Shown piece by piece: positions 1-58,913 of a stretch of 64,000 nt of DNA. Both the position numbers and the translations under genes were made by a program. Numbering within the stretch: position 1 is the stretch's first letter; each line of letters opens with the position of its first letter. Below the pieces are notes generated by a model, which ran no database searches, was not told the origin of the DNA, and saw nothing but the letters and a program-made list of their open reading frames with translations. The DNA comes from Paraphysomonas bandaiensis (lineage: Eukaryota; Protista; Chrysophyceae): positions 124,001 to 188,000 of the forward strand of contig CBFFRP010000362.1 of the NCBI GenBank assembly GCA_965644295.1, read 5' to 3'.

Positions 1-3000
1 ACTCGAAGTTTGCAGGACACCGACCAATCAGTTTGACGCGCTCCATCTTAGACGCTTCAAGACGCTGTCTCTCTTCTTCACGCAGACGCTCTTTCTTAGC
101 TTTCTCGGCTTTTTCTATAGCTTCTTCTATCAATCGACGACGTTCCTCTTCCTCTTCGATACATCGAATTAATTCGGTTACGTTGGGTAATAGTATACAA
201 CACTGTCGACGCAGCATCAGCGAGACTCTATCCGGAGAACTAGATACTTTTCGTGCTACCATAGCAGTCAACTCCTCAGGAATATTTTGGCTTCGGAGAA
301 TATCCCTTGTAACATAAATACTGTATCCCATTTCAGCCAATGCAGAGTCCAGTGCATATAATACATCGTCGTCTGAGCAGTTAATCTCCTCTACCGCTTC
401 CATATCCTCGATATTTTCTTTACAGTCCTCAGTAGGCAACTCTCCAAATGATATATTTTCCATTGTTTGGATACTGGGAACTCCAGAATCACATTGTACT
501 GCCTCACATATAGCGTCGGGTGCATTGAATCTTATAGTTTCACAGTCTCCCTTGTGTGGGGTTGAGTCCATAAGTGGGCGTTGGCTGCGCATGTCCAGCA
601 GGGCCGTGGTAATATCCTCTTCCGTGTAAGTCCCCTCAACAACCCCGTTCTCGTCACATCTCCCCTCACGAGCCGACATCATTTTATCATGAAGGGTAAC
701 GACGTCACCAGCATTCCCCCAACCGTCCCGATGACTCAGGTCTGCAAAACCGTCCAATAGAACACTATGATACGCCTCTGGCAAACGGTTACCTTCTCGA
801 TTACAAAGTTTCGATAGCAAATTCAAGCAGTCATGTGGGGTCCATGCCTCAAAGGGGATTTTTTCTGTGATTCTCCGTCTCAACCCTTCGTTAGAACGGA
901 GGAGCTTATCTATGTCAGCAGCATATCCAGCCAGAATGACGATCATGTTTCCGGCATACTTTGGATCGGTCATATTAGCCAGAAGTTTTTCCACCGCATC
1001 CCGCGAGAATGCAGAACGAGAGGAGTCCAGACCATATGCTTCGTCAATGAATAACACTCCGCCACGTGCCTCATCCATTTTAGCATTTACGAGCGGTGCT
1101 GTCTGTCCAACATAGGAACCGATGAGGTCCATGGCCTTTACCTCTACAACATCTGAGCTGGACAGGAGTCCCAAATTATGAAACACTTCTCCAAAGGCCC
1201 GCGCCACAGTAGTCTTGCCTGTGCCAGGAGGACCAACAAAGCAGAAGTTTTTTAATATATTCTTAGGCTCTTTTCCGTTATATCGAGCCACTTTAATTCT
1301 CTTCTCGATTTTCGTTATGTAATTTCGGATGTTGTCCATGTTGCATAGGTGATCCAACACAGCCACAGCACTGCCCTCACTGGTCACCTCAAACAAATCT
1401 CTGTCTACCAGCACCCATCGACCGTCCTTCTTCTCCCTGTCTGGGCGATTCATCATGCGCTCCTTTCCATGGTCTAGGAGATTGTTAACAGCGCCAGCAT
1501 TTCCAAAGTTTGGCTTTGCGCGTTGCTTTGCGAGAACTTTGACGACGGCTTTCTGGGCCAGCTCTTGAGTTAAATACAGCCCTGTCTTTAGTGCCTTCTC
1601 CATCATGATACTTACCAACTGATCGTCATCGTAATCATCGAAGTGAAATGCATCTTCATACCTAAAGCGACGGGCTAGACCTAAATATATACACATAACT
1701 ATTGGAATAGATAATTTCTCAAAATACAAAGTCGTAACCTGGATTTCCATCTCGAATCATAGCGGACATTTGATCTTTATATCCACATAAAATGACAGCG
1801 AAATCTTCTCCGGGGGTCCCCTGCACCCTTTCTACCAGCACATCTAGAGCTTCTCGACCATACGTCGTTGTGGAAAGGACATAGGCTTCATCAATTACAA
1901 GAACTTTACCCTTAACTGAATCTAGCAGACTGTTAACTTGTTGCGCTGTAGCGCCCACAACTGAGCCTGTCATTTTGCTTGCACCGATTACCGTCACCTC
2001 TCCTATCGAGAGATATCCTAACTCGCACAAAATACGGCCATATATACCGGCAACAGTCGTCTTGCCAGTGCCAGGATTCCCCAGAAACATTCTATGCAAA
2101 CAAATATCCAGTACGCCTTCTCCTCGCAATTCGCTCTTGTAATTTTCTTTTGCGATTTCTAAAATTCCTAACACTGACTGTTTGACCATATCTAATCCGG
2201 ACATTTTCATCAATGACTGAACCACTTCAGAGGAAGAAGGGTCAAGCGGAGGAGAAATCACATCTGGAAGAGTTAATGTTATGCTGTGATGATCAGGCAG
2301 CTTCTCTCCTCTGGCAGCTGCATCTAGAGTTTCTTTTTTCTGCCTTTTGCTCGCAATTCGCATGGCATTTTCAACCATTACTCGAACAGATCGGGCATTA
2401 GCAAATCCTTTGCGACTAGCACTTCTTGAAAGGCGTCGGGCAGCTACACTTGCAACGTCAACTGATGATGTGGGGTAATCAACAGGATTAAAGTTTTCTA
2501 TGTGCCATTTGAATTTAGATTTTACCATATCAATAAAAATAGTACGCAGTTCGTTTTCATTGAAGTCGTCAAACGTTATCTCCATTGGAAAGCGAGAAGA
2601 TATTCCTGAGTTAGAATATACCCATTTCTCCCGCACATCATCCCGGTACCCTGCCACAATAACTGTCAGCTTGTCGCGGTCATTCTCAGTGGCTTCCATA
2701 ATAGCATTGGTAATGGCGCGCCCTTCCTGATTATTCTTAGGATCTAACTGATATACTTCATCTATAAACAAAATCCCCGGTGTAGAATTCTTTAGCAAAG
2801 TACTAAACTTAGAGGAACCGTCTTGGAGTAATTTCTGGCCTGATGTCTCAACAAATTTGTCAGCTACTCGCAATCCAACGGCGGACAATATCTGGCCAAA
2901 TATCCTTGCGGCTGTAGTTTTCCCGGTCCCCGGATTACCGTAAAATATAAAGTTCATTGACTGTCTTGAGCTAACGCGAGACTCCACAGGGCGTTCCATG

Positions 3001-6000
3001 TCTCGTCGCAGAGACTGAAATAAATCAAGGGCCAGATCTTTGACTCGCCGCAAGCCAGTCATATTCATCAGTTGATCAAGTGGCGGACAACTAGCCGCAT
3101 CGAAAAACTTTGCGGCTGCCCAAGAATGAGAGGGATCGCATGACTTATCAGTCAATGCGTTAGTTGCAGCATTTTCTATGTCATCAGCGCATTGTTCCAG
3201 TGTGCTGCGGATTGGGTCTCGAAGTACAATATCCAAAAACGACTTATGGGCTTTGTTCACAATATGCCAACAACTAAGAGGAAACAGGAACCGTATAACA
3301 TCAACCGCACCGTTTTCAGAGGCAGAAAGCAGTGGTGTATTCCCAAGATCGTCCCTCTCGTTTATATCTGCTCCACTCTTCAATAGACCCATAACTGTCA
3401 TAAGGTCGCCTCTGCAAGCAGCCAAGTGCAGCGCGCTCCCTCCTGTGGATGGCACCTTTACCGGAGCTGCGCTCTCAGAAAGAGTAGTGCCATTGCTATA
3501 TTCTGAAAGCACACTATTCCTCATTTTATTTTCGGTTACTTTTTCGCTAACGGCCTGATAAGTTTCAGTAGTCACCTTACGTCTCCTTTCATTCGCTTCA
3601 GCCATCTTTTTCTTAACATATCTAGCCCTTGCAACGGAATCAAGTAGCTCGTTCAATTTTTCAGGATCAAAATGATAAAAAGATTTCAGAGAAGGTGCAG
3701 AGTCCAAACGACTAGCAGCATCGAGCAAGTCAACAGCCTTATTAAGATCCTGTAAAGGCGATAAATTCACTGATACTAAATCATCAGATCCTCCAAGATA
3801 GCACAAGGCAGTGCTGATAAGTGCATCTCGTCTAACGGAATCTGCATTATCACAGTACTCATGACAACGAGATAGCCATAAAGTAGCCTCTCGCAGCTTT
3901 CCCAGAGAAATATTCGCTTGTCCAAGTAACAAATATATATTCGTCAAGTAGGAACAGTACTCGCTCTGACGGGCTTGAGCAACAAGCATAGCTTGAAGGC
4001 ATTCCACAGCCGCCCCTGAGCGGCCTGCAGAGATATCCGCCACAACTGCACCGAGGCGATGCTCCATTTGTCTAGCGAAGAATGTTCGTTGCATGGTACG
4101 CAGTGCGATTCGCACACAAACATCGTATCGGTAAGTTCCAAGTATAGTTTCACCACACTCTGGACACGAAGGTATTCGAATAGTTTCGTTGCCAATCGCA
4201 TCAGCTACAAACAAGGATAGCAAATTAGAAAATAATGATTAAATCTATGGCATGGTAGACATACAAACCTGATTTCGCTCTTAAACAATCCAATAAACTG
4301 ATATCAAACGCATGTCCACAGCGCAGTTCAATAAACCGACGACATGGAATCAGACCAGTTGGAAGATGAAGTAATGAAGCATAAGGTTTGCTAAAGAGGG
4401 AAAGGCTCTTTTCCACGTCCTCCGGTTTGCATTTTTCACAAAGACGTGGGCACCTCTCACCACATATTCCCATACAAGCATGTCCACAAGGAAGAGTTTT
4501 AGAACAGGGGTATTCACAAAGACGCACCAATTCGGATGAGATATGCTCGTCTTCGTTATTTCGTGGAATGAGTTTGTGCTCTTCATGGCATTTCGCAACA
4601 CATTTAAAGTGCTCGCACGAATACGAACACGGCTCCAAACACGTGTCACACTCTTCGCCGCATAACCGTGAACATGGGCCATGCGAGCAGCTGTAGGTAC
4701 ACGGCTTAGAGCATGGAGGACAAGCAGAATTATCGCCACATATATGCATGCCGCGACATTTATGATTGCAAAGCAGCGACCGGGAGCAATTCTTCGTACA
4801 CGGTGGGTGGCGCGTGGAATCAACCATACCATTACAATTACAATCACTACAGCTTCCGCCACAAGCATGGCCGCAGTAAAGGAGTTCGCCACAAGCTTCA
4901 GAACAGAGCATACCACTGATATCTTCCGAACAAAATACTTCTTTGAAATGCCTTGGAGAGAATTTGCAGTACGGAATTGTTTTTTTCACCAGCACTTCAC
5001 AGTATTCGTTACAAGGTAGACCACACCTTAGCGTACATTGATGGCCACACTTTAATACTTTTGAGCAAATTTCTGTGCACTCTACAGATAATACATCCTC
5101 GAAGCACTTTAATGTCACCTCATGTCCACAAGGAAGGGCTTTTCTAACAGGAACCAAACAATCTCCACATCTTTCATAACACTTTTTGGGGCATTGATGA
5201 CTGCACGTGGGCCGTGTGCGGGCACAGGGTTGCTTGCATTTGTGTTCCACGCTATCGTGCCCAGTGCGACTACATGCCGCGTTGCAGGCATGACCACAAG
5301 GCTGCTTAAAACCGCACTTAGCTGGACATCCATACGAAGCTGAGTCTACGTCAGTACCGCAAGATACTTTAACTGTGTGACCACAAGAGGTTCGCAACTT
5401 TTCCATTATGACTGGGCATGGACCACAATCTTCCCAGCAACTCTTTCGGCACAGGTGAGTACAATTATCTGGTCGTGGTTTACGACAAGGCTGACAACAA
5501 CGAATATCGTTGTGTGGGATCGGGTGACAAAGAAGGGGGCATATATGACCACACGTCAATTTTGTGCTACACGGCTGGGTGCAACCACCGTAAGGGCATT
5601 TGTCAAAATCATCTGCACAAGACGCTTCCACCAAAGGTGCATCGGCATGATTCGGACACTGAAGCTGCAAAGACTTTCCGAAAAGATTCTTACTCTTCAT
5701 AAGCCTGCAAATTGTGCTCCACAAGTCGCTCGATTCGCAAAACATATCAAAATCTCCCATGACATACATCCCGTGCCGTGCTCTGGACAGTGCAACGCAT
5801 ACGCGATTGTGAACTTTCACGAAACCAGAAGTCATTTGAGCATTTGATCGTACTAATGACAAAAGAACTATATCACTTTCCTCTCCTTGGTAATTGTCTG
5901 TAGTAGTCATGCGAACCTTTTCTGGTGTTTCCTTTAAAAACGAGCTAAATTTACCACATTAAATAAAAATTCAAAAGCAAGCCAAAACTATTTGTACCTT

Positions 6001-9000
6001 GAAACTCGAGAAGACATTTCATTCGCAAGCCGTCGAAGTAGCATAAGTTGACCCTTATACATGGTTAGAACAACAATGTTTGATGCACGATAACCGTTGA
6101 GAAGAAGAAAATAAACTAGGCGTATCAAATATGCTGCCTCGTGATAATTGGATTTGCTCGCTGATATATCTAATCTAGAGGGGTGATATGCCGCAGCTCC
6201 TTTTATGGAACTGCAACTCTTGGACAACTCTCCGTCTTCCGGCACCTTGTGATTGAGAAAGAAGAGGCGATGTTGCACTCCAGAGACAGGGGGGTACAGG
6301 GATACAGATGGATCATTAATGAGATTGGAATAAATACTGGGCGTGATGAGTGCCGAGATATCTGGGTGCATTCGCCTTTGCGTTGTGAGAGTAACGTGTG
6401 GTACGCCTAAGCGAATCAGCCTTTCAAATAAAGATACATCCAAACCGTTATAGCGTCCAATATTGAATTCAGACACCTGTGGTCGGAGTTGCAAATGATC
6501 TCCAATTAAAATTAAATGCTTCGTTGATGGTGTTAGGGACGCTATCACACTTGCTTCTAGCACCTCAGCCGCCTCCTCAACTATAATTACCTCTGCGCCA
6601 AGTGCACGCAATAACGAATTGTGTTTCGCTGCACCATTGGCTGTCAATCCAATGACGGCTGCATTCTTTAAAACTTCCGCGTCATGAACAGCTTTGAACT
6701 TCAATTCAACGTCAGCAGCGTCTCTAAACATCTTCGTGAACCTCATGATATCCGAGCCTCCGTCTTTATCGAGAAGCCCGGCCCAGTATTTCGCTATTTT
6801 TTCCCGACTTTCTCGCGATATCTTGTAAATCCCAGATGTCGGACCAATATTATCTAGGCTAATAGGAATTAATACTGGGCGTTGTTGAATAATACGGACT
6901 TTAGCTTCATCACTAGTCATGCCGTTCTGAGATGTATCAAGCACAAAGTAGTCATCCCAATCCTCATCTAATATGCGGCTTGAGATTTCAGTTTCTTCGA
7001 TACCATCACTTTCAAAAAGCGGCTTTCTTTCAACTGATTCATCGATCGTCACAGCACTTTCATCAACGCATGCATCCTCGGCTCTAATATCACCCACAGT
7101 TTGCCACTCCTCCGTTGCACGATTCTTCTTCCTCTTGACATTAGCATTTCTTTGTCTCCAACTGTCTATTATTTGTAGCTCTACAGGTGCACGGTCCTGC
7201 GGGGTGTAAGTAGCCATATAGAGAAGGCGCTCATCGACAGACAGGTTCAACCAAGCGGAAAAATCTGAAACCCAGTCGGGGAGAAAATTTTTGCTTTTTT
7301 CATCGGTTTTTTCCATGACGACCGCAGAGCATATAGTCCAAGCATTTTTCTGGACCTCGTAAGGACACCCTATAACTAATTCGTCAATTACACCTCCACG
7401 ACCATTTCCTGTGCTCTCTAGAATAGTTTTGAGTCGCCCAAGTGAACTATTGGGGAAAGAATACAGACTTGTACAATCCTTAGATAAGAGACCACGCTGC
7501 AAGACGGACGCTTGCAAAGCAAGTAAGCTAAATCTCATTCGAGTAAGGGCATCATATTCATCAGAATCACGTTTGTGACATCGTGAATTGGATGCATTCC
7601 TCAAAGACAATCCCTGCATCAGAGTGGACTCAGATCGACCTCCAATTCGGATAATACTCGGCTCAAACTGATAAATCAGTTCTAACATCTGGTCGAGGGC
7701 ATGATTTGTTCCACATATATAAACCACAGGTTTTGGGGCCCTAATCTTCCTGTTTGAGAGCAATATACGCGATATTACCACACCAACGAATGTTTTCCCG
7801 GTACCAGGTGGCCCTTGTATCAGTGACACCCTCTTCGACAGAGCCAATTCAATAGCTCTACGTTGGCTATCATCCAACGAGATATCATCTCCATCCAGCA
7901 AAGGAAGACATGGTGTCGAGAGTGGATTCCAGTATTTCGTCCCGTAACTCTCATTAAAATCAGGGAAACAAGCGGACATGTCCCAACCCCGGGTATCAAT
8001 AGGCGGAGACCTCGAGAGCTGCGATTTACTGTTCGAATTCGATGCCCGCAGGTAAGACGGAGGGCCAATCAATTGACTTTGGCCCAGCAAAATCGTCTTG
8101 AAGGGAAGCATCGCATCTATTCCATGCTTTTGCAGGGCTATCAGCACTGGATAATAGGCCTCAAAGAATACCTTCGATTCAACCATGACATACGACTGAA
8201 GTGGATTGAAGCACTTTTCGCTCCTCGCATCAATAGTTATTGTCACCATAGGTATATTGTTCCTCAGTTGAACACCCCGCAGCACAGTGGCCACAACTAT
8301 AGTGTCTACATTGAAAGTTCCATCAGATGACAGACAAAGTAAACTGCCATTCATAAAACGGGAAGATCGGCTCCAGTCAATAGATTTGTTTTTGCCCAGA
8401 ACTGTAAAAGATACAGAGTAGCCGATTCTGCAATTCAATTGGACCACTTTCTCCACCGTCACATCACTGTACACACATAGGCTTGTATTGCCACCCATAT
8501 GAAGAGTGTTTCGTGCTATCTTCTCTAGCATTTGAGGGCTCGGGGGATTCTGTACAACACCTTCTATCATGTTTAATTGCCCACGAAGTGAGGCAATTCC
8601 TCGGCGCAACTGGGCGAGACAATCTTCACGGTTGAGTTGAAAATGTGTATTTAAGTAGTGATCGGTATTTCGAAACCTCATTGAAGTTGGTGGAGAGTCA
8701 TTGGTCGAATTCTGCGGGCTTTCCTCTTCTGAACATTCGATTTCGTTGTCAATATAGTTGTCACCAGTCTGTTTTCCCTGCCTTCCAATGCTCAGAACTA
8801 AGTTCTGAGGAAGCGAACTAGGAGCACTAGCTAGCAATTCCTCGGGGTGAGGAACAACATTGCACTCTAAGTAATCTCGGTCACGCGCCGGATCATCCAT
8901 GAACCGTATTCCTCGCCGTGCTCGTTGTTTCTCAAACTGTGCGCGATCGCTCTCTGCTTTTTCATCTTCCATTTTCTGGCGTTGGGTATGCTGTACGACT

Positions 9001-9734
9001 TTGATAGAATTCTGCTGCATATCAATCACTGTGATAAGTTGTTCGTAGAGATAGAGCGCTTTTGAAGTGCACTCCTCCTTTCTATTTGCTCCGATCCCTG
9101 AGATCCAGGTGGCCATGATAGGGTGGACCTCAGAGAAAGTGTCTCCCAGTAGAGTCTTCACCCGCAACTCCAGAGTCTCTATCGGCAACATATTGCGACT
9201 GTCAAGAAAGTAACGCATGACAGTCGCAAAGACACCAACCACAGATAAGGCATACTCCACGGACCTCATCCACAGTGAGCTGCCTCTCCCAGAATCTACC
9301 GCTTCAGATACTTGACTTGGCGAAAGAGGGCCCATTTGAAAATACATGGTCATTGCCATAATACTTTGGGGCGAGTTCAAGGGAACATATAACTTCGAGG
9401 CCAACACATTGTTCATGATGTTCGGATGAGACAGTAATTTGAACACAACAGTGAGCAGGTCTCCCGTCATATCACTCTGAATACCTGAGGGTCCCATAAT
9501 TTCACTCCAATTATCTGCATTAGGACCTCTAAACTCATGAATGATCTGATCCTCGCTCCATTTACTTAATTTATTCTCAAGGAATTCGATCTTACAAGCC
9601 AATGAATTGCCAATCTTATTCCTCTTATCCTTAAACCCTTTCGCCTCCCCTTCCCCTCTTCCACTTCTTCCTGGACGTCTTCCCCCACGTCTTCCTCTGC
9701 CATCTCTTCCACGACCACTCCAACTCGAATACAT
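1..9734 (-). CDS. ZNFX1-like SF1 RNA helicase with NF-X1 zinc fingers, split RING-like motif, TPR-like helices, ankyrin repeats and 3 CbbX/SpoVK-type AAA+ domains; runs off the left edge
   Basis: Four exons joined in frame by GT-AG introns 5945-5997, 4205-4268 and 1681-1738 (exons 9734-5998, 5944-4269, 4204-1739, 1680-<1). Helicase motifs QGPPGTGKT, EEAAE, GDHLQLRP, QRRM, DNYQGEE, VALSRAR; many CGHxC fingers; CGH...CPEC; ankyrin ALHLAA/GNTPL; Walker A/B pairs GNPGTGKT/FIDE, GNPGTGKT/VIDE, GPPGTGKT/FIDE. Confidence 0.9.
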
Positions 9735-10670
9735 CTGTAATTATGAGTATCATGTTGCCTGACTGGGAATGTACGTTATTGTCCATTTGTTGGAGTGACC
9801 GTCCAAGATACTAATAATTTATACTTGGAAAGTGTGTAAACATTGACTTCGTCCTCACATTCCCATATATATTTTTGCTCTTTTTTTACAAAGATACTTC
9901 AGTTCTGTACCATTGTATGGGGATAGAGGTTGCTGTGTATAGAGTACTGTAGCACTCATCAGCAGCAGTATTGTAGCTATGTATACGGCGGTATACCGAC
10001 GGTACACACCTGCTACTATGATCATCTACCTTAAGCAGCAGTGTGCAGAGTTAACAACTACAATCGTTGAAGCGAATGTGGTCTATTATTATCCAGCCCC
10101 ACATGGATCTTGCTCTGAATCTCACACTGCAAGTATGATTGGACGGCATGTGCGTATACAAGTCATTCGTATCTGACCTGGCCCATCATGTGTTTGTAGT
10201 TGGGGGTGTTTCCTCACCACAATGTCTAAACGCTTTGATTTTCTATGAATGGGAAAACTCTCTCTGATGACCTAATATTGTTCTGTTCTTGCTGTCAAGA
10301 ACCAAACGCACTTATTATATCTAGCGCCTTTTCATTGTAGTCAACCCTTCAGTTGTGGTGATAGAACAGCGTATGACTTCAAGCATTAGTCAAGGGAATA
10401 ACGAAAGTACCGTGTACTAGGCTAAATCATTCACACCTTGCACAACTGTCAAAATCTCTTGTAAAATTTTGATGATTGCGTAAATTTGAAAAGTTAAGGT
10501 CACTTTGGTCAATGATTTGTTTTATAATTACGTAAAAGTTGAAACTGTATTAGTTACGTGACTAAAATCTAGTTATAGTATTTATCACGAATGCTCTACA
10601 ACTATTGTACTATACTACAGATTTTTTGCTTTCCTATGTTCGTTGCTCTCAACATTTACCCTTTAGTATA

Positions 10671-12980: not shown

Positions 12981-15065
12981 TCACGATATATTACAGCACA
13001 TATTTCCCGGATCAAAAACCGCTATTCTCCCCTAAAAATATAGTAAAAACGAGAGTTACCGCGCCAATATTGATAAACTGATATGTACTCTTACATGTTT
13101 TTCTTCAAATGTTTTGAAGCCAACCACTTCCTCTAGAAATGCATTCGAGCGAATATAGTCCCATCCCTCAAATATTTCCATGTCCAGTGATGTAAGCTGC
13201 AAGGAATCTCCACGTTTGTCTTCAAACTGTCCGATTTCATTCTGAGAGGCAACATGCAATTCTTTGTTCGGCACATACGGCGGTGGAACCTGATCGGCTA
13301 TGTGGGCTTCCCAATTGACATCAGCAAAAAAAGGGTGCTGCATGACTTCTTGTGGTCCTTGCGCGCCTAATCTCTGACGCTCATCTTTACATAGAAGTTT
13401 CTGAATAAAATCTATTGCGGTTTCGTCAAACAAAACGGGATTGAAAGTGGGTTCCATTTCTAACGTTGCAGTGTCCATTGCCTGTTCCCTGCTCTCAATT
13501 CCCTTCCATTTTCTTGCCTCTACAGATCTAAAAGGACATATACCGGAGAGGAATTCATACATCACACAACCGAATGAAAACCAGTCCACCGATAGCCTAT
13601 ATCGAATACGTCGGCCATGCTGATCTCGCCGAAGCATTTCTGGGGCCCAGTAACCTCTACTACCGCACGTCCCTGTCAATTTAGTTTTGTGTTAGAGTTA
13701 ATCGGTAATGCATATTGCGCACAACTGTTTCGTAAAGAGAGAGCATCACGGAATCTAGCACGCAACAAAAAAAGTGTAATACAATCATTATTCATCCCAA
13801 TTATAGTCTCATGGTCTACGCATACCAGTAATGCCGTTCTTGGAGACACGCACAGCCAGGCCAAGGTCAGATAGCTTCGTTTTTCCTGTACCATCCATCA
13901 GAATATTTTCTGGTTTCAGGTCCCTGAAAACAACTCCAAGGTCATGCAGTGCCTTAAGACCGAGCAGGGTTCGGACTCCGTAATACATTGCCTCTTGTTG
14001 TTTAAATGGCCCCCGTTTATATAACGCATAGCCAAGGTCACCCCCAGTCATGAGGTCTAGAATTAGGTACAGCTCTTCCGGCGACGAGAAGGCATACTTG
14101 AGTCCGACCACAAAAGGCGAGTCCAGCATAGTCAATGTCGCTCGTTCGGCGAGGATTAGCATTTCAGCTTTCATTAGCTTGATTCGTTTTCTGTCCATCA
14201 CTTTCATAGCATACAACTTTCCCGTCTGGCGGTGCTTGCATCCATTGACAACTCCAAACCCCCCTCTGCCCAGTACTCTGAACAGTGTGAAATCATCTGC
14301 AGATGCCGGCTGCTCACTGAGAATCATGAAATGCAGATACTCTGTGTACCGCGACGTTTGCTTGAAGTTATCAAAATGATTACATCGCATACATGAAAAC
14401 ACAATGTACTCCAGCTCATCAAAAAGTATCGGAGGATAGTCCTCTTTTCCTTCTTCACAGCTCTCAATAACCTCATGAACTGTCTCCAGAGGACTCCCCA
14501 CAATCTTGAGTATATTACACTCACTTTCTGCGTCAATATATTTTCTCCAGCGCAACGAATCATCGGTCATGGGTTGACTTCGACACAGATTACATGGCAC
14601 AGGAGGATTGCGTTCAACCGGGAACTTGCAACCTGAAGGTGACAAATATCTACTAACTATTACTGCAGCTATCTCCCGTCTTAACATTCGATGCGTTTTC
14701 TATATTGAAATAAGGTCATGATAAAACGGAAAAACAAAAATGATTTTCACCTTATATATCGCGACATCTATCAGGAACTCAGCAAATATAACTTTGCCTA
14801 TATCACGCAGGTACCGCGTAAACTGCACAAAATAAATAAGTATAAATATACAAGAGATATAAAAATAGACCATATAAAACCCCAGACAGTTGCTGCATAT
14901 GCCCTCTAGTTCCAAGCATCTGTCAGGCTTAGTAATAGCAGTTGAAACGTAAGTATCAACATCTTCTGCACTCGGTCGCTTCCAAAACTTCGTCGGCTTC
15001 GGGACCGTATCCTGCACCTCTTTGGAAAATATTGTATCGTCTACATGGTCCTGTAGCTCGTCCAT
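12981..15065 (-). CDS. G-protein-coupled receptor kinase (GRK)-like AGC kinase with N-terminal RGS-homology region
   Basis: Exons 15065-14871, 14822-14751, 14699-13826, 13672-13095, 13031-12981 (GT-AG, in frame). GRK hallmarks RVLGRGGFG, TGKLYAMK, DLMTGGDL, SDLGLA, GYWAPE; predicted C-terminus MCCNIS. Confidence 0.85.
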
Positions 15066-15877: not shown

Positions 15878-18800
15878 ATGCGATTTTCTAACCCTTCAAC
15901 CCAAACTCTAATTAACATTATTGTCGAGGAAATTTTGACTTGTGATAAGTGTGCGAAACCACTGGCCACTTCCAACCCAGAATCACTTCCGAAGACCCTA
16001 GAATGCACTCACACGTTCTGTGTCGCCTGTCTTGAACAAATGCGTATGGGGACTGGTTTATATAGTACAATTACTTGTCCTACATGTGGTATTGAAACAG
16101 CAATAGGGGTTTCTGGGGTAACTGGATTGAAGAATAATCATAAACTTATGTCGCTCCTAAACATATTGGAGACCTTGTGCTGTGAGTGTAAGGCTGAACC
16201 TGCTTCCGTGCGGTGTACAACTATTCAAGAAAGTCATATATATTTATGCAAGTCATGCTTCTCGGCTGCTTACGCTCATGCCGATCAGAAATTTAAAGAA
16301 ATTGCACCTTTTACAACGAAGCGGACAGCGACCATGGCATGTAACCCTTCCCACCATACCGAGAAGACATTATTTGAAGCACAATCCAGCCATAGAGTAT
16401 TGTTACACGGTGGACGAGAATGGAATAGTCAAAATCTGGAGGCGGCATTTGTCGAGGGTGAGCAGTTGGAAGACTCTTGGTCAGATGACCTCACGCTGGT
16501 CGTTTCCTTACCGCATTATGATTCGATGGATCTTTTCGAACAGAGGTAATATTATTTACGTATGTGTTAGTGCATGCACAAGATATTGTATATGACTTAA
16601 ATTCACTATTACATGCTGTCGTACATGTGCTTGATTCAATGCATGAATCTAATGTGTGGTGTAGACACGATGTAGTGCAAACAATTGCATCAGATACGGG
16701 CACAAACATTTTTCTACAAATGAAAAACAACGAGCCTAAAGTGGTCATAAGATGCTTGGATCATTCGTCCAAGAACCAACTAATCGCTGCTCGTGATCGT
16801 ATAATGCAGTTTTTGCATAACCCTCACCGAACACCATCTGGTGGTTTTCGAAGTGGCGGCATCACAATTCCAGAATGTCCTAATGATGCAATTGATGTTG
16901 TTGACACTGTTATGCTTCCAAAGTCACAGTATGCGAAATTAGCTGCTGTTGGTTTTGCGCCAATACAGCGCATATCCCATCGTGTGGGGTGTCGATATGA
17001 TGTCGCTGAAGATTTCCATATGGGTTCGATAACATTCCGTGGTAGCCGTATCCAAGTCGATGAGTCAAAAGAGTTACTCAATCGTGAGCTAAATAAACGT
17101 CCGAATAGTTTTACAGGAAGTTTATTCTCATCAGATTCCCTGTATGACACCAATTCCACTGATGTGAAGCGTCGCCCGCACAGTTTCAACGGTCGCACAT
17201 CACCTTTTCCAGTTCTTGAGCAAGACTCTACGTTCGGAAGTTCACGAATTCACTCGATTCGAAGTACCCCTGTAAATAGCGATTTGACATCAGTGTGTAT
17301 CAATTGCGAGTATGATAGTGTGGGACGTCTTATAGGGGTGAAGGGTAGTCGCATAACTGAGCTTCGCGAAATTACTGGTTGTCGTATCTATGTCCGCAAA
17401 GGGTCGGATGCGTCAACACCATGTGTAGTGGAGATACTGGGAATGGCGAGCGATGTGGCAATAGCAGTCCCATGCGTAAAAATGGTTCTAAGCAGTGGTG
17501 ATCATGCAATGGAAAAAGTACGTGTTATGATGATGCAAAGTAACTCAGCTTTTGGTGCGAATGAGAATGGAGATCGGCATCGACATGCTCCCGTTAGAAG
17601 ACATACATTATCTTGTGCTGCATCTTCACTTGTATCGTCAACTTCTCCCCTTCCTTTGTCGTCGAAGAAGTGTACAGAGTCTTTGATGAGCGAAATGGCT
17701 TGTCAGGGTGCTAATTTAGAGTCCTTTCGTGACGGCACGTTGAGTGTAGTGAAGACTCAACTGGAAGAACCTGCTAGTAACGCGAGTTCAGATCGGCTTC
17801 ATGATGATTACTCAATAGCAATTCCAACCTCTGCATGGGTGCATGGTAATGGGGATTCAGATATTCCAAAGGAGTCTACTTACATGGATCATCACGTGGT
17901 GCAAACGGCAACTCCGGCTCTATCGGTAATATATCCTCAATATTTTATTTCCTCCCCTGGGAAGAAGGCTACAGAGAGTATTGTATGCCCGAGTGACAAG
18001 GTCACGTTTTTTCGCGGTCGACTTTTGACTGAAATTGCCTCCCAGTCTCGGTGCAAAATTACACTTGACGAATCACCGCAGCTACACAGCCCAATGCTTC
18101 ACCTGTATGCTACGAAAGAGCAACGAGAGTTGGCCAAGCTTTTACTTAAGTCCAGTATGAACTTGGCGCATACGTGGTATCCTGGTATGGATCGTTCAGA
18201 TGGGCTTGACTGTACAATGCATAGCATTGAATGCCCTCCACCAATTATTTCCGTGATTATCGGTCCAGGTGGTTCAACAATTGAAGATATTCAGGCGCAG
18301 ACGGGCACAAAGATATTAATAAGCGAATATTCCGAAGAGGTTAGAAAGATGCTCTTGAAATATAGTAATATAGTCACTTTTTCACAGGAATGCTTGTCTT
18401 CCATATATATTATTGGATCCCGGACAGGAGTAGACAGTGCCGCTCATCTGTTGGACAGGATATTAGTGACACAACGATGTCAGTATAGGCAGCACCTGGC
18501 AAACCTCTCGTCGCCCACACGCGTTGACTCAACATCCCCTAATGCGTATGACGCCAAAGCACTAGACGAGGTAGACTCTCATATTAATGAAATGTGTCCC
18601 AACGTAGTACCGACTTATCCACCTTCGTCCCGAGAAGCTGAGCAGACGTCAGTAAACTGCGGGCACCCTGGTGCACTTCTTACAGAAAATGTGCCACAGA
18701 TCAATTCTAATTACTCTGCAACTGCTGAGGCGGCCACTGGGGTGTCTCAATGTACTCTTATGTCGCCCAATCAAAATGATGTGCCTGCCCCGCCTGGAAT

Positions 18801-19446
18801 CACCAGGACACAAGACACCTCACAGCTTGCGCCTCGTGCTTCAAATGCTACAGATGAACCTTCTCTTGGGTATGTTGAGAGTGTGTTCACATGCCCGATG
18901 GATAAAGTTGCCAAGATTATTGGTAGAAAAGGCACCGTCCTACGAGAAATTAGGAAACTTAGTGAATGTGAAATAATCATAGACCAAGATACGAAATCTC
19001 GTTCGAAAAAAAGTTCGACTGGATCTATCTCTGACCAGACTGATTTCTCACCCTACGCAAGCTCTGATAGTTCCCTTCAGGTGATCAAAATTATTGGCAC
19101 ACCAATACAAATTGCAACTGCTCGCAAGCTAATTTCCGATGTAATTGACATTGGTCCAGCTGTTGCATTAGGCATGAAAACAGTAACAGTTGAGTGCCCA
19201 GTTGATAAGGTCCCCTTAATCATAGGGATTAAAGGCCTCACATCAAAGGAAATGATGCGACGGTCAGGGTGTAAGATTCACGTCAATGAAGATACAGCGG
19301 AAAACTTAACAACATGCACGATTGAGTTGACTGGAACAGATGAGCAGCTTGCGCAGGCACAAAAATTAATATCACATGTACTTGAGTTCGGTACGAAGGC
19401 TCTGGGAAAGCGATTCCAGCGTGCTCTAAAGGAACCCAAGGAATAA
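15878..19446 (+). CDS. RING + B-box-like + multiple KH-domain protein (putative RNA-binding E3 ligase)
   Basis: RING CDKC...CTHTFCVAC...CPTC; B-box-like CCEC...C...CKSC; KH GxxG loops IGVKG, IGPGG, IGRKG, IGIKG. Frame-restoring intron predicted at 16546-16664. Confidence 0.8.
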
Positions 19447-23103: not shown

Positions 23104-24251
23104 ATGCTGCTCATTGTCCTGACCATCATTGTCGTTGTATATAAAGCACTTGAAAAGTTTCCACTTGTGTTTAATAAACGCCGTAGATTTCTAGGTAAGA
23201 AAGGGTTCGCACAGGTGATTGCTCATAGAGGCTCTAGAGAGGAAGGCCTCACAGAGAATACTATCGCAGCGTTTGATGATGCAGCTAAAGTAGGAGCTGA
23301 TATTATCGAACTGGATGTGTGGTTGACGAAAGATGAAGAAGTTGTTGTCTTTCATGATGATACACTGACAAGGATGACCAATGGGGCATCCGACAAGTGC
23401 ATATCAGAACTTAATTATAGTGATTTACCTGACTTGGTGCCGTCATCTGAGCAGTCTTACCGTGTCACTGAATACGATGAACATAAATGGAAAAAAATTC
23501 CACTTCTGAGAGATGTCTTAGCAGCTCTACCACCAGATGTCTCTCTCATCATTGAATTTAAAATGAAGTCTGATACTCTGATAAAGAAAGTTATGCAGAT
23601 GCTGGTGGAGAGTAATCATGAAAAGAAAGTGTTTTGGTTCAGCCTAATTGAATCTATAAATGTCAAATTGCGTGAATTCAATCCTAATATTCCTACAATT
23701 ACGAGTGTGCTGGGCATTTTGAAAGTCCTTATTCTTTATTACACCGGGGTTTTACCGTTTGTATCTCTGGATGACGATGTGTTCGGAATCACAATGGAGG
23801 CGGTAAGGCTGCGACGTCTATATCGTATATACACATTATCACTTGAATCATCGAGCATTTTCACCTTTGCTAAGTTGCTATAAATTTTCAGATAACGCTG
23901 AAGGTAATTAGAGAGGAGCGTGCTCTTGCTAGTGTTCCTGATTGGATAAAGGTATGAGTTGCTTACACTATTCTGTTCACGCACTCAGTGCTTACTTTTC
24001 GTTTCTTGAAATGCTGTTAGGTCATTTTGTCATACGTGTTTGCTGGTGTTCCTCCAAAGATAATGCTTGCCCCTGGGTTATTCACTCACTTGCGTAAAAG
24101 AGGGGTACCAGTATGGTTTTTGGGGGTCAATCACGAAGAGCATGTTGAGATGGCCCGCACGTATGGTGCTACGGCGGTGCTGACGGACAGAGTGGACTGG
24201 TTAATGTCTTACATGAAAAAAAATAAAATATCATTCAGTAGAATAGAATAA
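23104..24251 (+). CDS. Glycerophosphodiester phosphodiesterase (GDPD1/GDPD3-like lysophospholipase D)
   Basis: IAHRG...ENT, IELDVWLTKD, VVFHD, IEFK, VLTD motifs with N-terminal TM; introns 23803-23890 and 23952-24020. Confidence 0.88.
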
Positions 24252-30348: not shown

Positions 30349-32357
30349 TATACATCCTAAAAAACGATGCGCCAGAGGAGCCTATACGTCAAGAGGAAGA
30401 AACAGAAGAGGACTACCTATACAGGAAAAAACGCCTACGATGAAAATATGCAGTATTTCGAGGAGGGCAACAATTACCTATGGTCACTTCTATCCAGCGC
30501 GGTGATTGGCCAAAACGAGGAAGCAGAGGATATTATCGAAACAGTCCCTGAAGGAGATGGAAAAAGGGCATGGTCAGAGATCGAAAAGCATTTCAAAGAC
30601 AAGACCTCAAATGATACGATAACCGACCTCATTGGCCAACTGCAATCAATCAAAATCAAGCAAGCTCAAACAAGCAATCAATTCCTGGACGAAGTCGAAA
30701 AATTGCGATTAAAGCTCGCTACACACGGCCACAAAGTCTCTGAACAAGACCTCATTTCAAGAATACGACAAGGGATGGTCTCAAATGAGAACCAGACCTA
30801 TAAGGACCTGGCAATCAACCTCCAAATGAACCCAATTGATGATTATAAAACGCTGATAAGAAGATTGAGAGCATTCGAGCATTCCACTGTAGGCTCCCTA
30901 CTATCACAAAATACGGAAACTAAACGGGATAGCGCAAACTACAGCTCAACAGGCAAACAGCCGTTTAACCCCCATCTATCGAAAAAGAAAAAGCACAACG
31001 GGCAGCGAAATCCAGCAAAACACAAGAAATTCAACAAATCCAGCAGAGCTACAAGTGCAAAGTCGCACGAAGTTAAGTGTTTCAGATGCAATGGATCCAA
31101 CCACATTGCAGCAGAGTGCAAGCACTCGTGGGAACACATACAACAGATGCAGAAGTCCACAAACAAACGAAACGACGACAAAAGAGGGAAAGGGCATCAC
31201 TCAAAGAACACATCATCAAAATACCCAAGAAACAGTCATCGGGATTCGAACTTAAGACTGGAAGACTATGACGATGAGGGGACAAACGATGACAATGACT
31301 ACAGTGCATTCTCTGGGATGATCACAGACAATCACGTCCTACATACGGAATACGAGAAGCAGGAATTTGGCATTCTAGACTCTGGCTGCACAATATCAAT
31401 TACAGCAGCACGAAGCTTACTCTCCGAATTCACTTATGACCAAACCACAATTTACACCGCCAAATCAGGATCAGAAATGCAGGCATTGGGATACGGCAAG
31501 CTTGGACTGATCAGAAAGTGCAAGCTAGTTCCAGATGCGTCAAAGACTTTAATTTCTATCAGCCAGTTGACAACAGACACCGACTGCAACATAGTATTCG
31601 GACAAAACGAGGCACGCATATACCTCGATGGAATTTTGTTAACCACAGCCAGGAAACAAAACGGTATATACGAGGTCAAATTATCCGATTTAGGTTACAT
31701 CCAAGACCAGTGCAACTTGGCATCTACATCAACAAGCGGTTCCTCGATTTCCCTGGCACATCGAAGGTTGACCCACGCATCCATTGGCTTAATTCAAAAA
31801 GCACTAAAATTGAATCTTGTAAAAGGAATCACTATTTCAAAATCCGACCTGAGCTCGCCACAGCTACCAGAAGGCCTTTGTGATGGCTGCGCATAAGGCA
31901 AGGCTCACAGGAGGAAACATAGGCGCGAGACAAGGCAAATAATACCGACAAAAACCAGAAGATCGCAGGAGCTTGGAGGACTTATAGCAGTTGATTTTAC
32001 CGGACCATTTTCACCTGCAGCAATAGTCACAGGAAACACCGTAGTCTTCGGAGCTACCGATGCAGCTTCAAGATACAGTTGAACATTATTCTATGGAAAA
32101 CACAGAACCGAGGATTTTGTCATTGAGTGCATTCAGAAAATTGTGGATTATCTGCATTCGAAAGGCAAACGGCTAGTACACTATCATGCTGATGGTGGTC
32201 GTGAGCTAGTATCACATCGTGTACTGAACTTGATGAGAAAATTAGGATCAACCTGGACCTTCAACGCTCCATACACGCCTGAAGACAACCCCATTCAAGA
32301 ACGACCATGGCGCACGACCAAGGAAAGAACGCTTGCATCCATTTGCAACTCAGGCCT

Positions 32358-35300
32358 GTGTGGGATTCTATGAGGAGCTACGAGATTCTCTTAGACACAT
32401 AAAGATTATGGAGTGGAGGAAAGTGACAACTGTCACGTTCGAACAGTTTTACTTCCAACAGTTGAAACTTATTGATTTGTTTCGAACCATGTTATCCATA
32501 ATGCTGGAGTTTAATAACATTGTTCTTACACTTGCGTGTTTGTGTGGTATACCTGTACTGCGAGCAGTGATTCTGGTTATCAAACCGGGTTGCGTCATAG
32601 TAAATATTTACTTATTTGCTCGCACAAGAATTCTTGTGATTAATTCTTGATACACATCATTTAGATAGACCTGTCTGTGTGACTTGCTTGTGTGCGTTGT
32701 GCAGGGGTGTCTTGTGTTAGTGTGTTGAGTGGTGTCTTGGTGTCTTGGTGGATTCTTACGCAGGTCTGTGGATTTGTAAGTTTCTTCCGGGGGACTTGGG
32801 ACTGGATTTAAGTTATTTCATTGAGACCTGTGAGCGAATTTTCAATTCCCTCCTTGTCGATCTTTGTTAGTCTCTGAAACCAAGGAAGCTGCGTAGCTCT
32901 GAGGTGGAAAATCTGCTGGTGTGCATAAATATAGAACCGTTGTGAGCGGAGCGCTTGATTTACGAGCGAACCCCACATATTAGGCAATATATATATAATC
33001 ACTGTGTGGGTATATAAACTAAAGAGTGTAACAGCAACTAAGGTGGAAGATGCAAACTCCCGTTGGTAGGAGTAGCCCTAAGAGCCATAATATCCATTCT
33101 CGGTTGATGTGATATGTACTTGCCCCCCTATAGGGTAGTATGGGTAATGCCAGTACGTATTCCTATGGAAGTATACACTGCAACTGCTACACTGGAATAC
33201 TGACCCACATAACTTTATTATATATTTGTGGCAGGTTTCACATTGCGTGAAGTCACCATCAGCAGATCGTAGTGTACATCATCATCAGCAGATAAAGTGG
33301 ACATCACACCTGAACGTTGATTCCGTGTGTAAGTACATCACAGCTCATTACCCCCTCTTAATGAGTATAACATAGAATATGCATCCTAGACATGGTATGG
33401 GGTCCTGATAATATAATGTTCTTGATATAGGGTCCTAAACTAATATCACAGGGTCAATGAAAACCCGGTTAGCCATGAAGGAAGCACTTATTCCCATAGT
33501 GCGCAACCTAAAACCACCGGGGGCTCGCAGTGCTATTGGAATTGATGCAGTGGAGATTACACCACATGGCAAGGACGGTTACACTCATATCAATGTGATA
33601 GTGAACCTTCACACAAAGCTCGTTTTTCTGGAACCAGTAAAAGGAGTAACGGCTTTGAATTTAGCGAATACTGTGTGGAAGTATTGGTCCTATTACGGTC
33701 ACACGGACGTCGTGATTTCGGACCAGGGTCCGGATTTAACTTCGGATCTATTCCAACAGCTAACGGAGTACATGGGAATGCGCCATACGTTCAGTATAGC
33801 CAACCGACATGCGAATGGCTCAGAACGTATCATTGGTGAGGTAGTTCGTCACCTACGAGCTCTAGTATATGATGCTAGCGAGCGTCAAGAGCGCAAGGAT
33901 GTTTTTGAAGATCCTAGCTGGATCGCCAGTGTCCAACACATTCTTAACTCTGAAGTGTCATCTGAGACGGGATTCTCACCATTCGAGTTAACTTTTGGAT
34001 CGGAGGGCAAGCGTTATTTTAACGTGGACACCGACTCTCTTTCCCAGGATGCGCATGCACGACTTAAACGTTTTAATGATAACCTTCGTGAGCTCAGGGC
34101 AGCTTCGCATGCTTATCAACAGCGTCTTGTGCAAGAGCGGGCTAGCCAAGGTATACCGGCCGACAAGCAGAACAGATATCAGCCGGGAGATCTTGTTTTG
34201 TTTGACAAGGGTGCTAAAGTCCATCCTAAGATGTCTCACCGTTATATGGGTCCTTTCAAAGTCATATCTCAATATAAAAATGACATTGATTGCAGACATT
34301 TGGTGACTGGACAAGTTGTGAAAGTCGATGTGCGGGAGGTTAAACTTTTTGCGGGTGATCAAGACACAGCGTATAACATGGCTTGTAGAGACCATGAACA
34401 GCATGTGATTGACACGATTCTATACTACAGAGGTGATAGAGACACCAGAACCTCTCTAGTTTTCACTGTGAAATTTCAGGATGGTGATGTTCGTGACATT
34501 CCATTCAGTAAGGATATTTTTGACTCTATTCCATATGCCGATTTCTGTTCTAGGAAAAGATATTTATATCATCTTATTTATCCGGTTAAAGAGGCAAAGG
34601 AATATATTGCAAAAATCCGTAAACAGCCTATCACTAGTTTTCAGCCAGGTGATGAGGCTTATGTTGACTTAAGAGTTTTCGGGGACCTGTGGTATGAAAG
34701 CCTGGAGTTACCGGATTCTCATTTGATTACTTATGTTGCACGTTTTGTCTTCACACATTGGTATCACAAAAGTTCCAAACGGATACTTTCAACTAAAAAT
34801 GTGTTGACTAAACAAACTTTCCGACTTGATAATTACCATATTCATTGTTTTGCCCATAAAGAATTCGATTCTTCCACAATGGTCTTGGTAGACGAGGATT
34901 TTGCCAGCAAATTTCCACAAGTTAATCAGTCGGTATAGAGTGTTCCTACTCTACAATTTACGATGTGAAATTTTCCAGTATTCTCCGAATTACATCTATA
35001 ATATGATAATAAAACTCCATGGTGGTTCGTTTTGATGGCTATTTCAAACCTAGTCCCATTGACATGTGTGCGACCATGGATTTCTCACAAAAAAGAGGGG
35101 GGGGAGGCAGTGTGACCACACGTGGCATTTCCTATGCCCTATCTACGTGGCTATAGTACCAGAACTGCATGCATTGCCCATTCAGGACCCTGTGATATTA
35201 GTAGAAGTATCTTCCTCCTCCAACAATTCTCTTACAGACTCATCCCGCCAAGGAGTGCGATAGTGCTCCGCCAGATTATGCAGAGTAGAGTATCTCCTTG

Positions 35301-35639
35301 TATCACGTTTCTTTACCGGTTTCGGCAACGTGTCAGGAACAGTAGGTGTTCCTTTCGTAACTGTTTCATCTGCCCCTGGGATATTTTGATCTTCCCTTAA
35401 AATCGTGGGGCTCTGCGCTCTAGAGCCGACAGGTGTACCTCTACGTGAGGCTCGCTCTTCGAGTCGCGTGACTCTGAACGTTAAGTCATCTATTCTCGTA
35501 TCGAATTTCCTTTCCAAGGCATCGAAACGTGCAAGAATGATTTCGAGCATTGAAGGCTCTAGATCCTCCTTAACACTGTCTTTAACACTGCCTTCAGAAC
35601 CAGAGTGGCTCTTAGGGCTACTCCTACCAACGGGAGTTT
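32358..35639. mobile_element. Rearranged Ty3/Gypsy-derived insertion interrupting the Copia integrase
   Basis: Flanked by GCCT (32354-32357, 35640-35643); removal restores Copia NSGLPPNFWEQA. Contains gag pieces in both orientations, an integrase, PPT (~35090-35107) and a split LTR. Confidence 0.85.
33457..34938 (+). CDS. Gypsy-type integrase core with GPY/F motif and chromodomain-like C-terminus (N-truncated)
   Basis: IGID, ISDQG, NGSER (DDE), TGFSPFEL, YMGPF; followed by a PPT and TGTGAC LTR start at 35111. Confidence 0.85.
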   Translation: MKTRLAMKEALIPIVRNLKPPGARSAIGIDAVEITPHGKDGYTHINVIVNLHTKLVFLEPVKGVTALNLANTVWKYWSYYGHTDVVISDQGPDLTSDLFQQLTEYMGMRHTFSIANRHANGSERIIGEVVRHLRALVYDASERQERKDVFEDPSWIASVQHILNSEVSSETGFSPFELTFGSEGKRYFNVDTDSLSQDAHARLKRFNDNLRELRAASHAYQQRLVQERASQGIPADKQNRYQPGDLVLFDKGAKVHPKMSHRYMGPFKVISQYKNDIDCRHLVTGQVVKVDVREVKLFAGDQDTAYNMACRDHEQHVIDTILYYRGDRDTRTSLVFTVKFQDGDVRDIPFSKDIFDSIPYADFCSRKRYLYHLIYPVKEAKEYIAKIRKQPITSFQPGDEAYVDLRVFGDLWYESLELPDSHLITYVARFVFTHWYHKSSKRILSTKNVLTKQTFRLDNYHIHCFAHKEFDSSTMVLVDEDFASKFPQVNQSV

Positions 35640-58736: not shown

Positions 58737-58913
58737 GTTGTTCTTGTTGCTGTCCATTGAACGGTAGTGTCAGATCATATTGTCCTCCTTCCACATCATG
58801 GCATCATCTCATTGCATTATATGATGGTATTCTGTCAGCATATGCTGTTTGTTATTTGAGTGTTGTTGTGCGGTGTATGCGTCAGGTGTTGTTCGGGTAT
58901 ATCTTCAGAGGGG

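Follow-up and report, generated by a model that had tools for sequence, protein, structure and literature searches.

We analyzed a window of 64,000 nucleotides (nt) from Paraphysomonas bandaiensis (positions 124,001 to 188,000 of contig CBFFRP010000362.1, assembly GCA_965644295.1), the left end of which carries, on the minus strand, one expressed gene encoding a cytosolic-type protein of 3,212 residues. The N-terminal two thirds of this protein are a genuine ZNFX1-family module with a superfamily 1 (SF1) helicase and a cysteine-rich finger array, and they are followed by ankyrin repeats and by three tandem AAA+ modules which, judging by their sequences, belong to the SpoVK/CbbX/EccA clade. The protein is an ankyrin-bearing variant of a known, uncharacterised pan-eukaryotic helicase-AAA+ family. 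A preliminary description of this DNA had proposed a one-protein RNA-sensing immune machine, in which a ZNFX1-type helicase-E3 ubiquitin ligase is fused to ankyrin and AAA+ domains. According to our analysis the E3 assignment is doubtful, and a role in small-RNA pathways or in ribonucleoprotein (RNP) remodelling is at least as likely as an immune role. All positions given below without a contig name are those of the window.

The gene consists of four exons that join into a single frame of 3,212 codons. Exon 1 (9734-5998, residues 1-1245) encodes an RG-rich start, an N-terminal helical region, the ZNFX1 domain, RecA1 and most of RecA2; exon 2 (5944-4269, residues 1246-1804) the end of the helicase, the NF-X1 finger array and the first half of a Z-RING-like motif; exon 3 (4204-1739, residues 1805-2626) the second half of this motif, a helical region, the ankyrin repeats, the first AAA+ module (AAA1) and most of the second (AAA2); and exon 4, which starts at 1680 and ends 79 nt beyond the left edge of the window (1421-1500 of flank L001; residues 2627-3212), the AAA2 lid, the third module (AAA3), a linker, a three-helix domain, a 70-residue helix and a C-terminal knuckle. 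The listed minus-strand open reading frames (ORFs) 5988-9734, 4225-5910 and 1719-4223 were used for this model, together with the open frame 1680-1. The latter contains no stop, as had been predicted, and extension of the contig to the left added 26 further codons before a stop 79 nt beyond the window edge. Introns 1 (5945-5997, 53 nt, donor at 5997), 2 (4205-4268, 64 nt) and 3 (1681-1738, 58 nt) are all of the GT..AG type, and each of them interrupts a recognisable domain or conserved motif, namely AAA_12 (RecA2), the Z-RING-like motif and the NPG/LARRF arginine-finger motif of AAA2, respectively. The term 'in-frame', applied to these introns in the preliminary description, is loose wording, since their lengths are not multiples of three and they contain stops. 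No upstream exon was evident in the 1 kb preceding the start codon (ATG) at 9734, and an in-frame stop lies immediately upstream of it.

The stretch was present in six public sequencing runs, with 95% of its words found in X1-X3, which come from three studies, and 100% in X4-X6. When run contigs were aligned to positions 1500-6100, those of X1, X2 and X3 omitted exactly the three predicted introns (CT..AC on the plus strand), and the contig of the DNA run X4 retained them and was colinear with the genome. Because canonical introns are precisely removed in their contigs, we take X1-X3 to be RNA. All three junctions were crossed by single contigs in X2 (8,758 nt) and X3 (5,946 nt), and the separate helicase and AAA transcripts that would have contradicted one giant protein made through three introns were not seen in these data. 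On the 5' side the X1 and X2 contigs reach, by extrapolation, to about 9685-9689, some 45-50 nt short of the ATG, so that transcript coverage is missing for the RG-rich start of ~15 residues. The same observations bear on the explanation that a neighbouring ZNFX1-like helicase gene and an ankyrin-AAA gene were falsely joined, either by read-through transcripts or by the assembly. Stand-alone proteins with ankyrin repeats, three AAA modules and the knuckle are indeed known, such as Saprolegnia diclina XP_008609610 (1,430 residues), but intron 2 lies within the Z-RING-like motif and intron 3 within AAA2, the exons share one frame without a stop, X2 and X3 each have one contig across every junction, and the homologue P0005/P0156 repeats the domain order, ankyrin repeats included, in an intronless, continuous ORF of 2,902 residues from an independent metagenome scaffold. 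This artefact has already been largely refuted by these findings, and we regard it as extremely improbable.

For domain assignment the exons were searched separately, and the spliced protein was used for local alignment and screening. The Pfam matches above cut-off were the ZNFX1 domain, AAA_11 and AAA_12, Ank, Ank_2 and Ank_4, three AAA domains (PF00004) and AAA_lid_6. The ZNFX1 domain (PF25396; 8172..8489, residues 416-521) scored 61.8 bits against a cut-off of 27, and 67.2 bits in a genome scan, where it was the sole such domain; the gene is single-copy and also the only close helicase in this genome. The Upf1-like SF1 helicase core (5782..7877 including intron 1, residues 620-1300; AAA_11/AAA_12) contains the Walker A motif GPPGTGKT at residue 641 and, at 1049, the deviant Walker B VEEAA that human ZNFX1 also has, and this EEAA form has been described as ZNFX1-specific (10.1101/2025.10.14.682297). 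Furthermore, the closest solved structure for the helicase was human ZNFX1 (9q9z_A, E 1e-87; Upf1, 2e-21), and the GPPGTGKT and IVEEAAEVLEA blocks are identical to those of the human protein. The ZNFX1-type SF1 helicase of the preliminary description is confirmed by PF25396, AAA_11/AAA_12 and the match to 9q9z_A. In one alignment, homology to ZNFX1 on the N-terminal side began near residue 193. The NF-X1-type finger array that follows (4417..5664, residues ~1340-1755), also predicted, was located by pattern matches and alignment. It comprises 7 fingers under a strict pattern and 10 under a loose one (C-x-H-x-C starts), with 81 Cys in residues 1301-1835, and aligns at 30-33% with the ZNFX1 arrays of Daphnia (P0170), a spider (P0167) and the glomeromycete Ambispora (P0171), which are true ZNFX1 proteins bearing an RZ finger.

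Behind the fingers lies a Z-RING-like hemi-RING (4113..4416 including intron 2, residues ~1756-1835; RFIELRCGH...CPECG) that is colinear with true ZNFX1. In the human protein, a Z-RING/Miz-like E2-binding domain occupies residues 1533-1631 and includes F1575, the zinc site C1591/H1593/C1619/C1622 and the linchpin Q1623 (10.1101/2025.09.05.674436). The local alignment to the Daphnia, spider and Ambispora proteins spans the RING-like motif, which is therefore the counterpart of the Z-RING. The split RING-like motif noticed earlier was correct in this sense, and it retains the zinc ligands C-x-H...C-x-x-C as well as the flanking RF.xL and RY, but the linchpin position after the second Cys pair is a Gly, where all aligned relatives have K or R and the human protein has Q. 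The equivalent of the E2-binding Phe falls in an indel-rich loop of the alignment and could not be placed with confidence. In addition, the RZ finger (PF20173) had no Pfam match in any exon of the gene, and two other loci of the genome encode RZ fingers, one of them in a U-box protein. The RZ finger carries the catalytic Cys (and His) of ZNFX1, and that of RNF213 likewise carries a catalytic Cys. The absence of this finger together with the Gly at the linchpin position makes the E3 assignment doubtful, and the label 'helicase-E3' could not be upheld.

The split RING-like motif was also tried as an RZ finger and rejected, as the 79-residue spliced peptide reached only E 0.055 and 13.5 bits against a cut-off of 27 and fitted better as a Z-RING homologue. 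Regarding the RZ fingers elsewhere in the genome, a large multi-exon gene on contig C219:170000-179999 (L004; plus-strand ORFs 4048-7239, 7247-8206 and 8185-9858) encodes a U-box (E 1.4e-16) and then an intron-split RZ finger, an arrangement that resembles the two-part E3 module of ZNFX1 and is separate from the genome's only ZNFX1-type helicase. The second RZ-finger locus is ORF 6478-6948 (minus strand) on contig C186:18000-27999 (L005), which scored 49.6 bits in the genome scan; an adjoining ORF of 968 residues had no Pfam match.

The ZNFX1-type part is connected to the C-terminal modules by an alpha-helical region of about 200 residues (3498..4112, residues ~1836-2040). This region is judged helical from its composition alone, and its conservation is confined to P0001 and P0004, the closest relatives. 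TPR-like helices had been suggested here, but TPR_8 scored 13.8 bits against 25.7 (E 0.068) and thus remained below cut-off. The ankyrin repeats (3243..3455, residues ~2055-2125), in contrast, were detected by three models over their cut-offs (Ank_4, 35.2 against 22.7 bits; Ank_2, 34.2 against 27.3; Ank, 33.6 against 21.1). They are followed by AAA1 (2238..3065, residues ~2185-2460; Walker A at 2227, Walker B DEVY at 2282, AGY...NSGISSRF), AAA2 (1355..2210 including intron 3, residues ~2470-2735; Walker A at 2513, Walker B DEAY at 2572, CGY...NPGLARRF) and AAA3 (575..1342, residues ~2740-2995; Walker A at 2776, Walker B DEAY at 2835, AGY...NEGLRRRI). A motif scan of the whole protein gave four Walker A and four Walker B motifs. 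The nucleotide motifs of the three AAA+ modules are intact, as had been predicted, and all three have an (A/C)GY sensor-1 and an arginine-finger motif of the form N-x-G-x(1-3)-R-[FI]. Pore loop 1 is canonical in AAA3 only (SYVGQT at 2816), AAA2 having SVVG and AAA1 no pore-loop aromatic.

These modules are of the CbbX type. SpoVK, EccA and CbbX were the leading NCBIfam models for every one of them, all with scores under the equivalog cut-offs, which indicates clade membership and not orthology, and CbbX and EccA1 were their best sequence matches in the PDB. In the AlphaFold2 (AF2) model of exon 4 (44-sequence alignment; mean predicted local distance difference test score, pLDDT, 87), AAA3 was modelled at pLDDT >90, and its best Foldseek match was CbbX (TM 0.7); for the AAA modules VIA-align also gave CbbX (Z 22.8). 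The published signatures of the SpoVK/CbbX/EccA clade include the GY sensor-1 and a conserved Asn four residues before the first Arg finger (PMC11513918); the Asn is present in all three modules, and its spacing to the Arg finger agrees with this definition in AAA3 only. A Protein Atlas search with exon 4 returned generic AAA clusters only.

The model of exon 4 predicts, in order, the AAA2 lid, AAA3, a disordered linker, the three-helix domain, the 70-residue helix and a C-terminal mini-sheet with a helix. At the place where a coiled coil had been proposed, it contains one single long charged helix (26..235, residues ~3109-3178; 482-551 of exon 4, pLDDT ~93). The C-terminal Cys motif, of which only the start had been visible, was read to the stop and proved to be conserved among relatives. 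This knuckle of about 30 residues (1..25, the rest in flank L001:1424-1500; residues 3179-3212) is predicted to form three short strands and a helix (pLDDT ~94). Of 174 retrieved proteins, 45 carry the motif CPxG[FY]xW(5-6)GG[WY]RCxGGSH[FY]V at 25-41 residues from the C-terminus, with invariant C, W, G, C, GG and H. No Pfam family corresponds to it, and its length of 30 residues precludes a fold search, its support being conservation and the predicted beta-structure. The same knuckle (CPMGYTWHREGNGWRCAGGSHRVNDF) ends the protein of a paralogous gene on contig C108:120500-130499 (L003; minus-strand ORFs 1974-4784 and 4887-9989), which also has a triple CbbX-type AAA region; its N-terminal region of 1,700 residues had no Pfam match, and its first Walker A is interrupted by an intron.

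We then placed the protein among its relatives by an exhaustive profile search with exon 3, which gave 69,356 matches because the AAA domain is so common, and the spliced protein served to screen the best 150 representatives locally. In 23 of these 150, all of them proteins of 2,000-3,800 residues, an SF1 helicase occurs together with Cys-rich fingers and a triple AAA region. They include Neurospora tetrasperma EGO56093, Orbilia, two chytrids (among them Gaertneriomyces KAJ3187506), the oomycete Thraustotheca clavata OQR96792, the rhizarian Spongospora CRZ09038, the euglenozoan Diplonema KAJ9456884, the green alga Cymbomonas KAK3240587 and the amoebozoan Mastigamoeba, which has an extra RRM. 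All of these are annotated as hypothetical or bear unspecific names, for instance 'cfxQ-like' or 'AAA+ ATPase domain-containing protein'. The Paraphysomonas protein has the features that characterise this fusion family, that is, a helicase N-terminal to three tandem AAA+ modules and the knuckle at the end. A word search with exon 1 gave 13 matches, the close ones being metagenome proteins, within a length window that excludes full-length kin.

Ankyrin repeats beside the AAA modules were also found in P0001, P0002, P0004, P0005, P0006, P0009 and others, as well as in stand-alone ankyrin-AAA proteins such as that of S. diclina. In a quick maximum likelihood tree of the triple AAA region (59 rows, with representatives included up to the first 58 covering the region; midpoint root, support by SH-aLRT only), the Paraphysomonas protein grouped with P0001, P0005, P0009, P0006, P0007 and P0002 (SH-aLRT 99). 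Apart from the Paraphysomonas protein, this ankyrin clade consists of environmental sequences only, nearly all of them with ankyrin repeats, and it is separate from an ascomycete clade and from a mixed clade of protist, chytrid and oomycete helicase fusions. The Z-RING-like segment is also present in the clade members P0001 and P0009, and in P0004, which is not in the tree. The fusion of an SF1 helicase to SpoVK/CbbX/EccA-like AAA+ modules in eukaryotes has been mentioned in a 2024 paper (PMC11513918), and the fusion as such is therefore not new; given its pan-eukaryotic occurrence, the novelty is lower than the preliminary description implied. That paper was the only mention found, and the literature searched yielded neither work on ZNFX1 in stramenopiles, fungi or chytrids nor an experimental study of the helicase-AAA family. 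As for the ankyrin-containing form, it is otherwise known from environmental sequences alone, and one of these is full-length and keeps the domain order.

Compared with ZNFX1, the Paraphysomonas protein has in common the ZNFX1 domain, the Upf1-like helicase with the EEAA Walker B, the NF-X1 array and the Z-RING-colinear hemi-RING, but differs by the lack of the RZ finger, by the linchpin Gly and by about 1,150 extra residues after the helical region (ankyrin repeats, three AAA+ modules and knuckle), none of which are found in ZNFX1. These modules take the place that the catalytic RZ finger has in animal ZNFX1. With the helicase-AAA+ fusions of Neurospora, Thraustotheca and others it shares the helicase, the Cys-rich fingers, the three AAA+ modules and an identical C-terminal motif, although the fusions named above are without ankyrin repeats. 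In addition, for the fusion proteins P0046 and P0074 the Pfam ZNFX1 domain was not among the matches listed (best 25 of 30 for P0046), and the Z-RING-like segment was not found by BLAST in non-ankyrin fusions except for a weak match in P0020. The stand-alone proteins, that of S. diclina and the C108 paralogue, have the same C-terminal module but no helicase or fingers. The AAA+ fold, the GY sensor-1, the N-x-G..R motif and AAA_lid_6 are shared with CbbX (a red-type Rubisco activase), SpoVK and EccA1, and the Tyr pore loop of AAA3 is like that of CbbX; however, those proteins, found in bacteria or plastids, form hexamers of subunits with one module and a small N-domain, whereas here three modules stand in tandem within a giant eukaryotic helicase protein.

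RNF213, the other protein invoked in the preliminary description, is likewise a giant protein combining AAA+ modules with a RING-like element, and its RZ finger links it to ZNFX1 by analogy only. Its AAA ring is dynein-like and built of six modules, and it carries a RING as well as an RZ finger, unlike the Paraphysomonas protein with its three CbbX-type modules and no RZ. The arrangement of the modules was viewed in P0005, the closest full-length homologue at 46% identity, whose triple AAA region (1880-2720) was modelled with AF2 (pLDDT 91.7, predicted template modelling score 0.80). Two modules of this model align with D1-D2 of NVL, Rix7 and Pex1/6 over ~460 residues (root-mean-square deviation, rmsd, 5.5-6.1 A; Z ~15), and no dynein, midasin or RNF213 chain was among the top 50 of Foldseek or VIA with this model. 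The model hints at AAA modules stacked in tiers and not at an RNF213-like planar ring, and together with the clade assignment it speaks against the RNF213 analogy. A dynein- or RNF213-like planar half-ring was considered for the modules and set aside in favour of the type II D1-D2 match, an observation of low weight.

With regard to function, we favour, with measured confidence, a reading in which an RNA-bound helicase brings a substrate-specific AAA+ remodeller to RNPs, most likely in a setting of RNA surveillance or of small RNAs linked to RNA-dependent RNA polymerases (RdRPs). The helicase would bind RNA and translocate along it, with the finger array expected to form the same kind of stalk that it does in human ZNFX1; the ankyrin repeats would recruit a dedicated protein or RNP substrate. 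This substrate could be threaded by AAA3 through its Tyr pore loop, as in CbbX, while AAA1 and AAA2 might serve assembly or regulation, and the output would be ATP-driven remodelling instead of RZ-mediated ubiquitin transfer. Characterised members of the SpoVK/CbbX/EccA clade act on one dedicated substrate and do not feed a protease (PMC11513918). Among ZNFX1-family helicases, Hrr1 and ZNFX-1 are partners of RdRPs in the amplification of small RNAs, and others act in antiviral RNA sensing (PMC9276528). The genome encodes an RdRP at two loci (C355, C96) and Piwi/Argonaute at two loci (C119, C212), and the presence of these genes along with a sole ZNFX1-family helicase favours an RNA-surveillance or small-RNA setting; an antiviral role would be possible via the same route. 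Several points weigh against this reading. The pointer given by the RdRP and Argonaute genes is circumstantial, and we infer the substrate, oligomeric state and RNA dependence of the family. The evidence for the finger array consists of motif patterns and alignment, as the Pfam zf-NF-X1 model had no match in the exons, the runs X1-X3 are not on record as RNA, so that their RNA nature derives from the missing introns, and the stacking geometry was drawn from a model of a 46%-identical homologue and not from the Paraphysomonas protein. Lastly, the Z-RING-like motif retains its zinc ligands, so that some residual E2 binding or E3 activity is conceivable.

The view put forward originally is that the protein is an RNA-sensing immune machine whose RING-like motif ubiquitinates targets while the AAA+ modules remodel them, as in ZNFX1 and RNF213. 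In its favour, animal ZNFX1 has homologous counterparts of the helicase, the finger array and the Z-RING segment, the C-x-H...C-x-x-C ligands are conserved, and human ZNFX1 keeps an RZ-independent, allosteric E3 activity via its Z-RING (10.1101/2025.09.05.674436; 10.1101/2025.10.14.682297). However, the gene is without an RZ finger in a genome that has two elsewhere, its linchpin Gly departs from both the K/R of relatives and the human Q, the E2-binding Phe has no confident counterpart, and the AAA modules are of the CbbX/SpoVK and not the dynein/RNF213 type. Furthermore, since the gene is single-copy and only one paralogous triple AAA gene (on C108) exists in the genome, there is no immune-type expansion, and we consider an immune E3 quite unlikely. 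A general remodeller of RNPs, of the ribosome-biogenesis type and unrelated to small RNAs or defence, in which the helicase merely anchors an AAA+ chaperone on abundant RNPs, deserves more weight, although it too seems to us rather unlikely. An 'RNA processing' role has been guessed for the fusion (PMC11513918), the characterised clade members are narrow-substrate chaperones, and the two-module arrangement resembles that of the ribosome-assembly proteins NVL and Rix7, but this similarity reflects a generic type II arrangement only (rmsd 5.5-5.7 A). The family has been kept across very different eukaryotes, including some lineages with reduced RNA interference, and word depth was high in the probable RNA runs, depth being a poor measure; every characterised ZNFX1-family helicase, on the other hand, acts in small-RNA or antiviral pathways (PMC9276528), which weighs against such a general role.

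ZNFX1 and RNF213 are a current focus for nucleotide-driven motor control of unusual E3 ligases in cell-autonomous immunity. In this context our data indicate that the ZNFX1 chassis of helicase, finger array and Z-RING exists in nature without an RZ finger and coupled to a CbbX/SpoVK-type AAA+ chaperone. A bolder proposal, which we offer tentatively as it is unlikely to hold, is that the ankyrin clade would be an RZ-less ZNFX1 branch in which the ubiquitin output was swapped for an AAA+ unfoldase, and that the wider family would represent an ancient pan-eukaryotic system in which the recognition of RNA directs an ATP-driven remodelling of proteins or RNPs, either for RdRP-dependent silencing or for defence against viruses. 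If this were true, ZNFX1 biology would gain a second, non-ubiquitin effector arm, testable in Neurospora and oomycetes; the helicase-AAA family occurs in genetically tractable organisms among these and the chytrids. The target of the AAA arm would inform both the substrate logic of the SpoVK/CbbX/EccA clade and the question whether ZNFX1-type helicases originally served to amplify small RNAs or to sense viruses. Specialists familiar with the family will hardly find the protein surprising, yet it offers a clear-cut case of the ZNFX1 chassis joined to a non-ubiquitin effector, and for this genome it provides a well-supported annotation of a 3,212-residue gene with its C-terminus read.

We also noted several features of the genome and of the remaining window. 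The RdRP domain at C355:114848-116518 (plus strand) lies within an open frame of 2,752 residues, pointing to an RdRP protein of very large size. Cytosolic HSP70 is encoded by at least four near-full-length copies, two in tandem (C264:1614-3425 and 7592-9403) and one each at C426:321018-322829 and C290:62073-63884; a Paraphysomonas MMETSP transcript matches the C426 copy at 97% identity and other chrysophyte transcripts do so at 84-86%, which fits a chrysophyte-like stramenopile and agrees with the protist host of the preliminary description. In the window itself, a 1,455-residue ORF at 58860-63227 (plus strand) had no Pfam match at E 1e-5, and positions 30367-37599 (plus strand) hold a Ty1/copia-type retroelement with gag-pre-integrase, integrase core, RVT_2 and SH3-like domains across three consecutive ORFs. 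Other neighbours of the gene are a protein kinase exon (13812-14687, minus strand), a multi-KH-domain protein (16564-19446, plus strand), a GDPD phosphodiesterase (23104-23883, plus strand), an SMC hinge exon (46777-48663, minus strand) and a mitochondrial ribosomal DAP3-like protein (52600-53613, plus strand).

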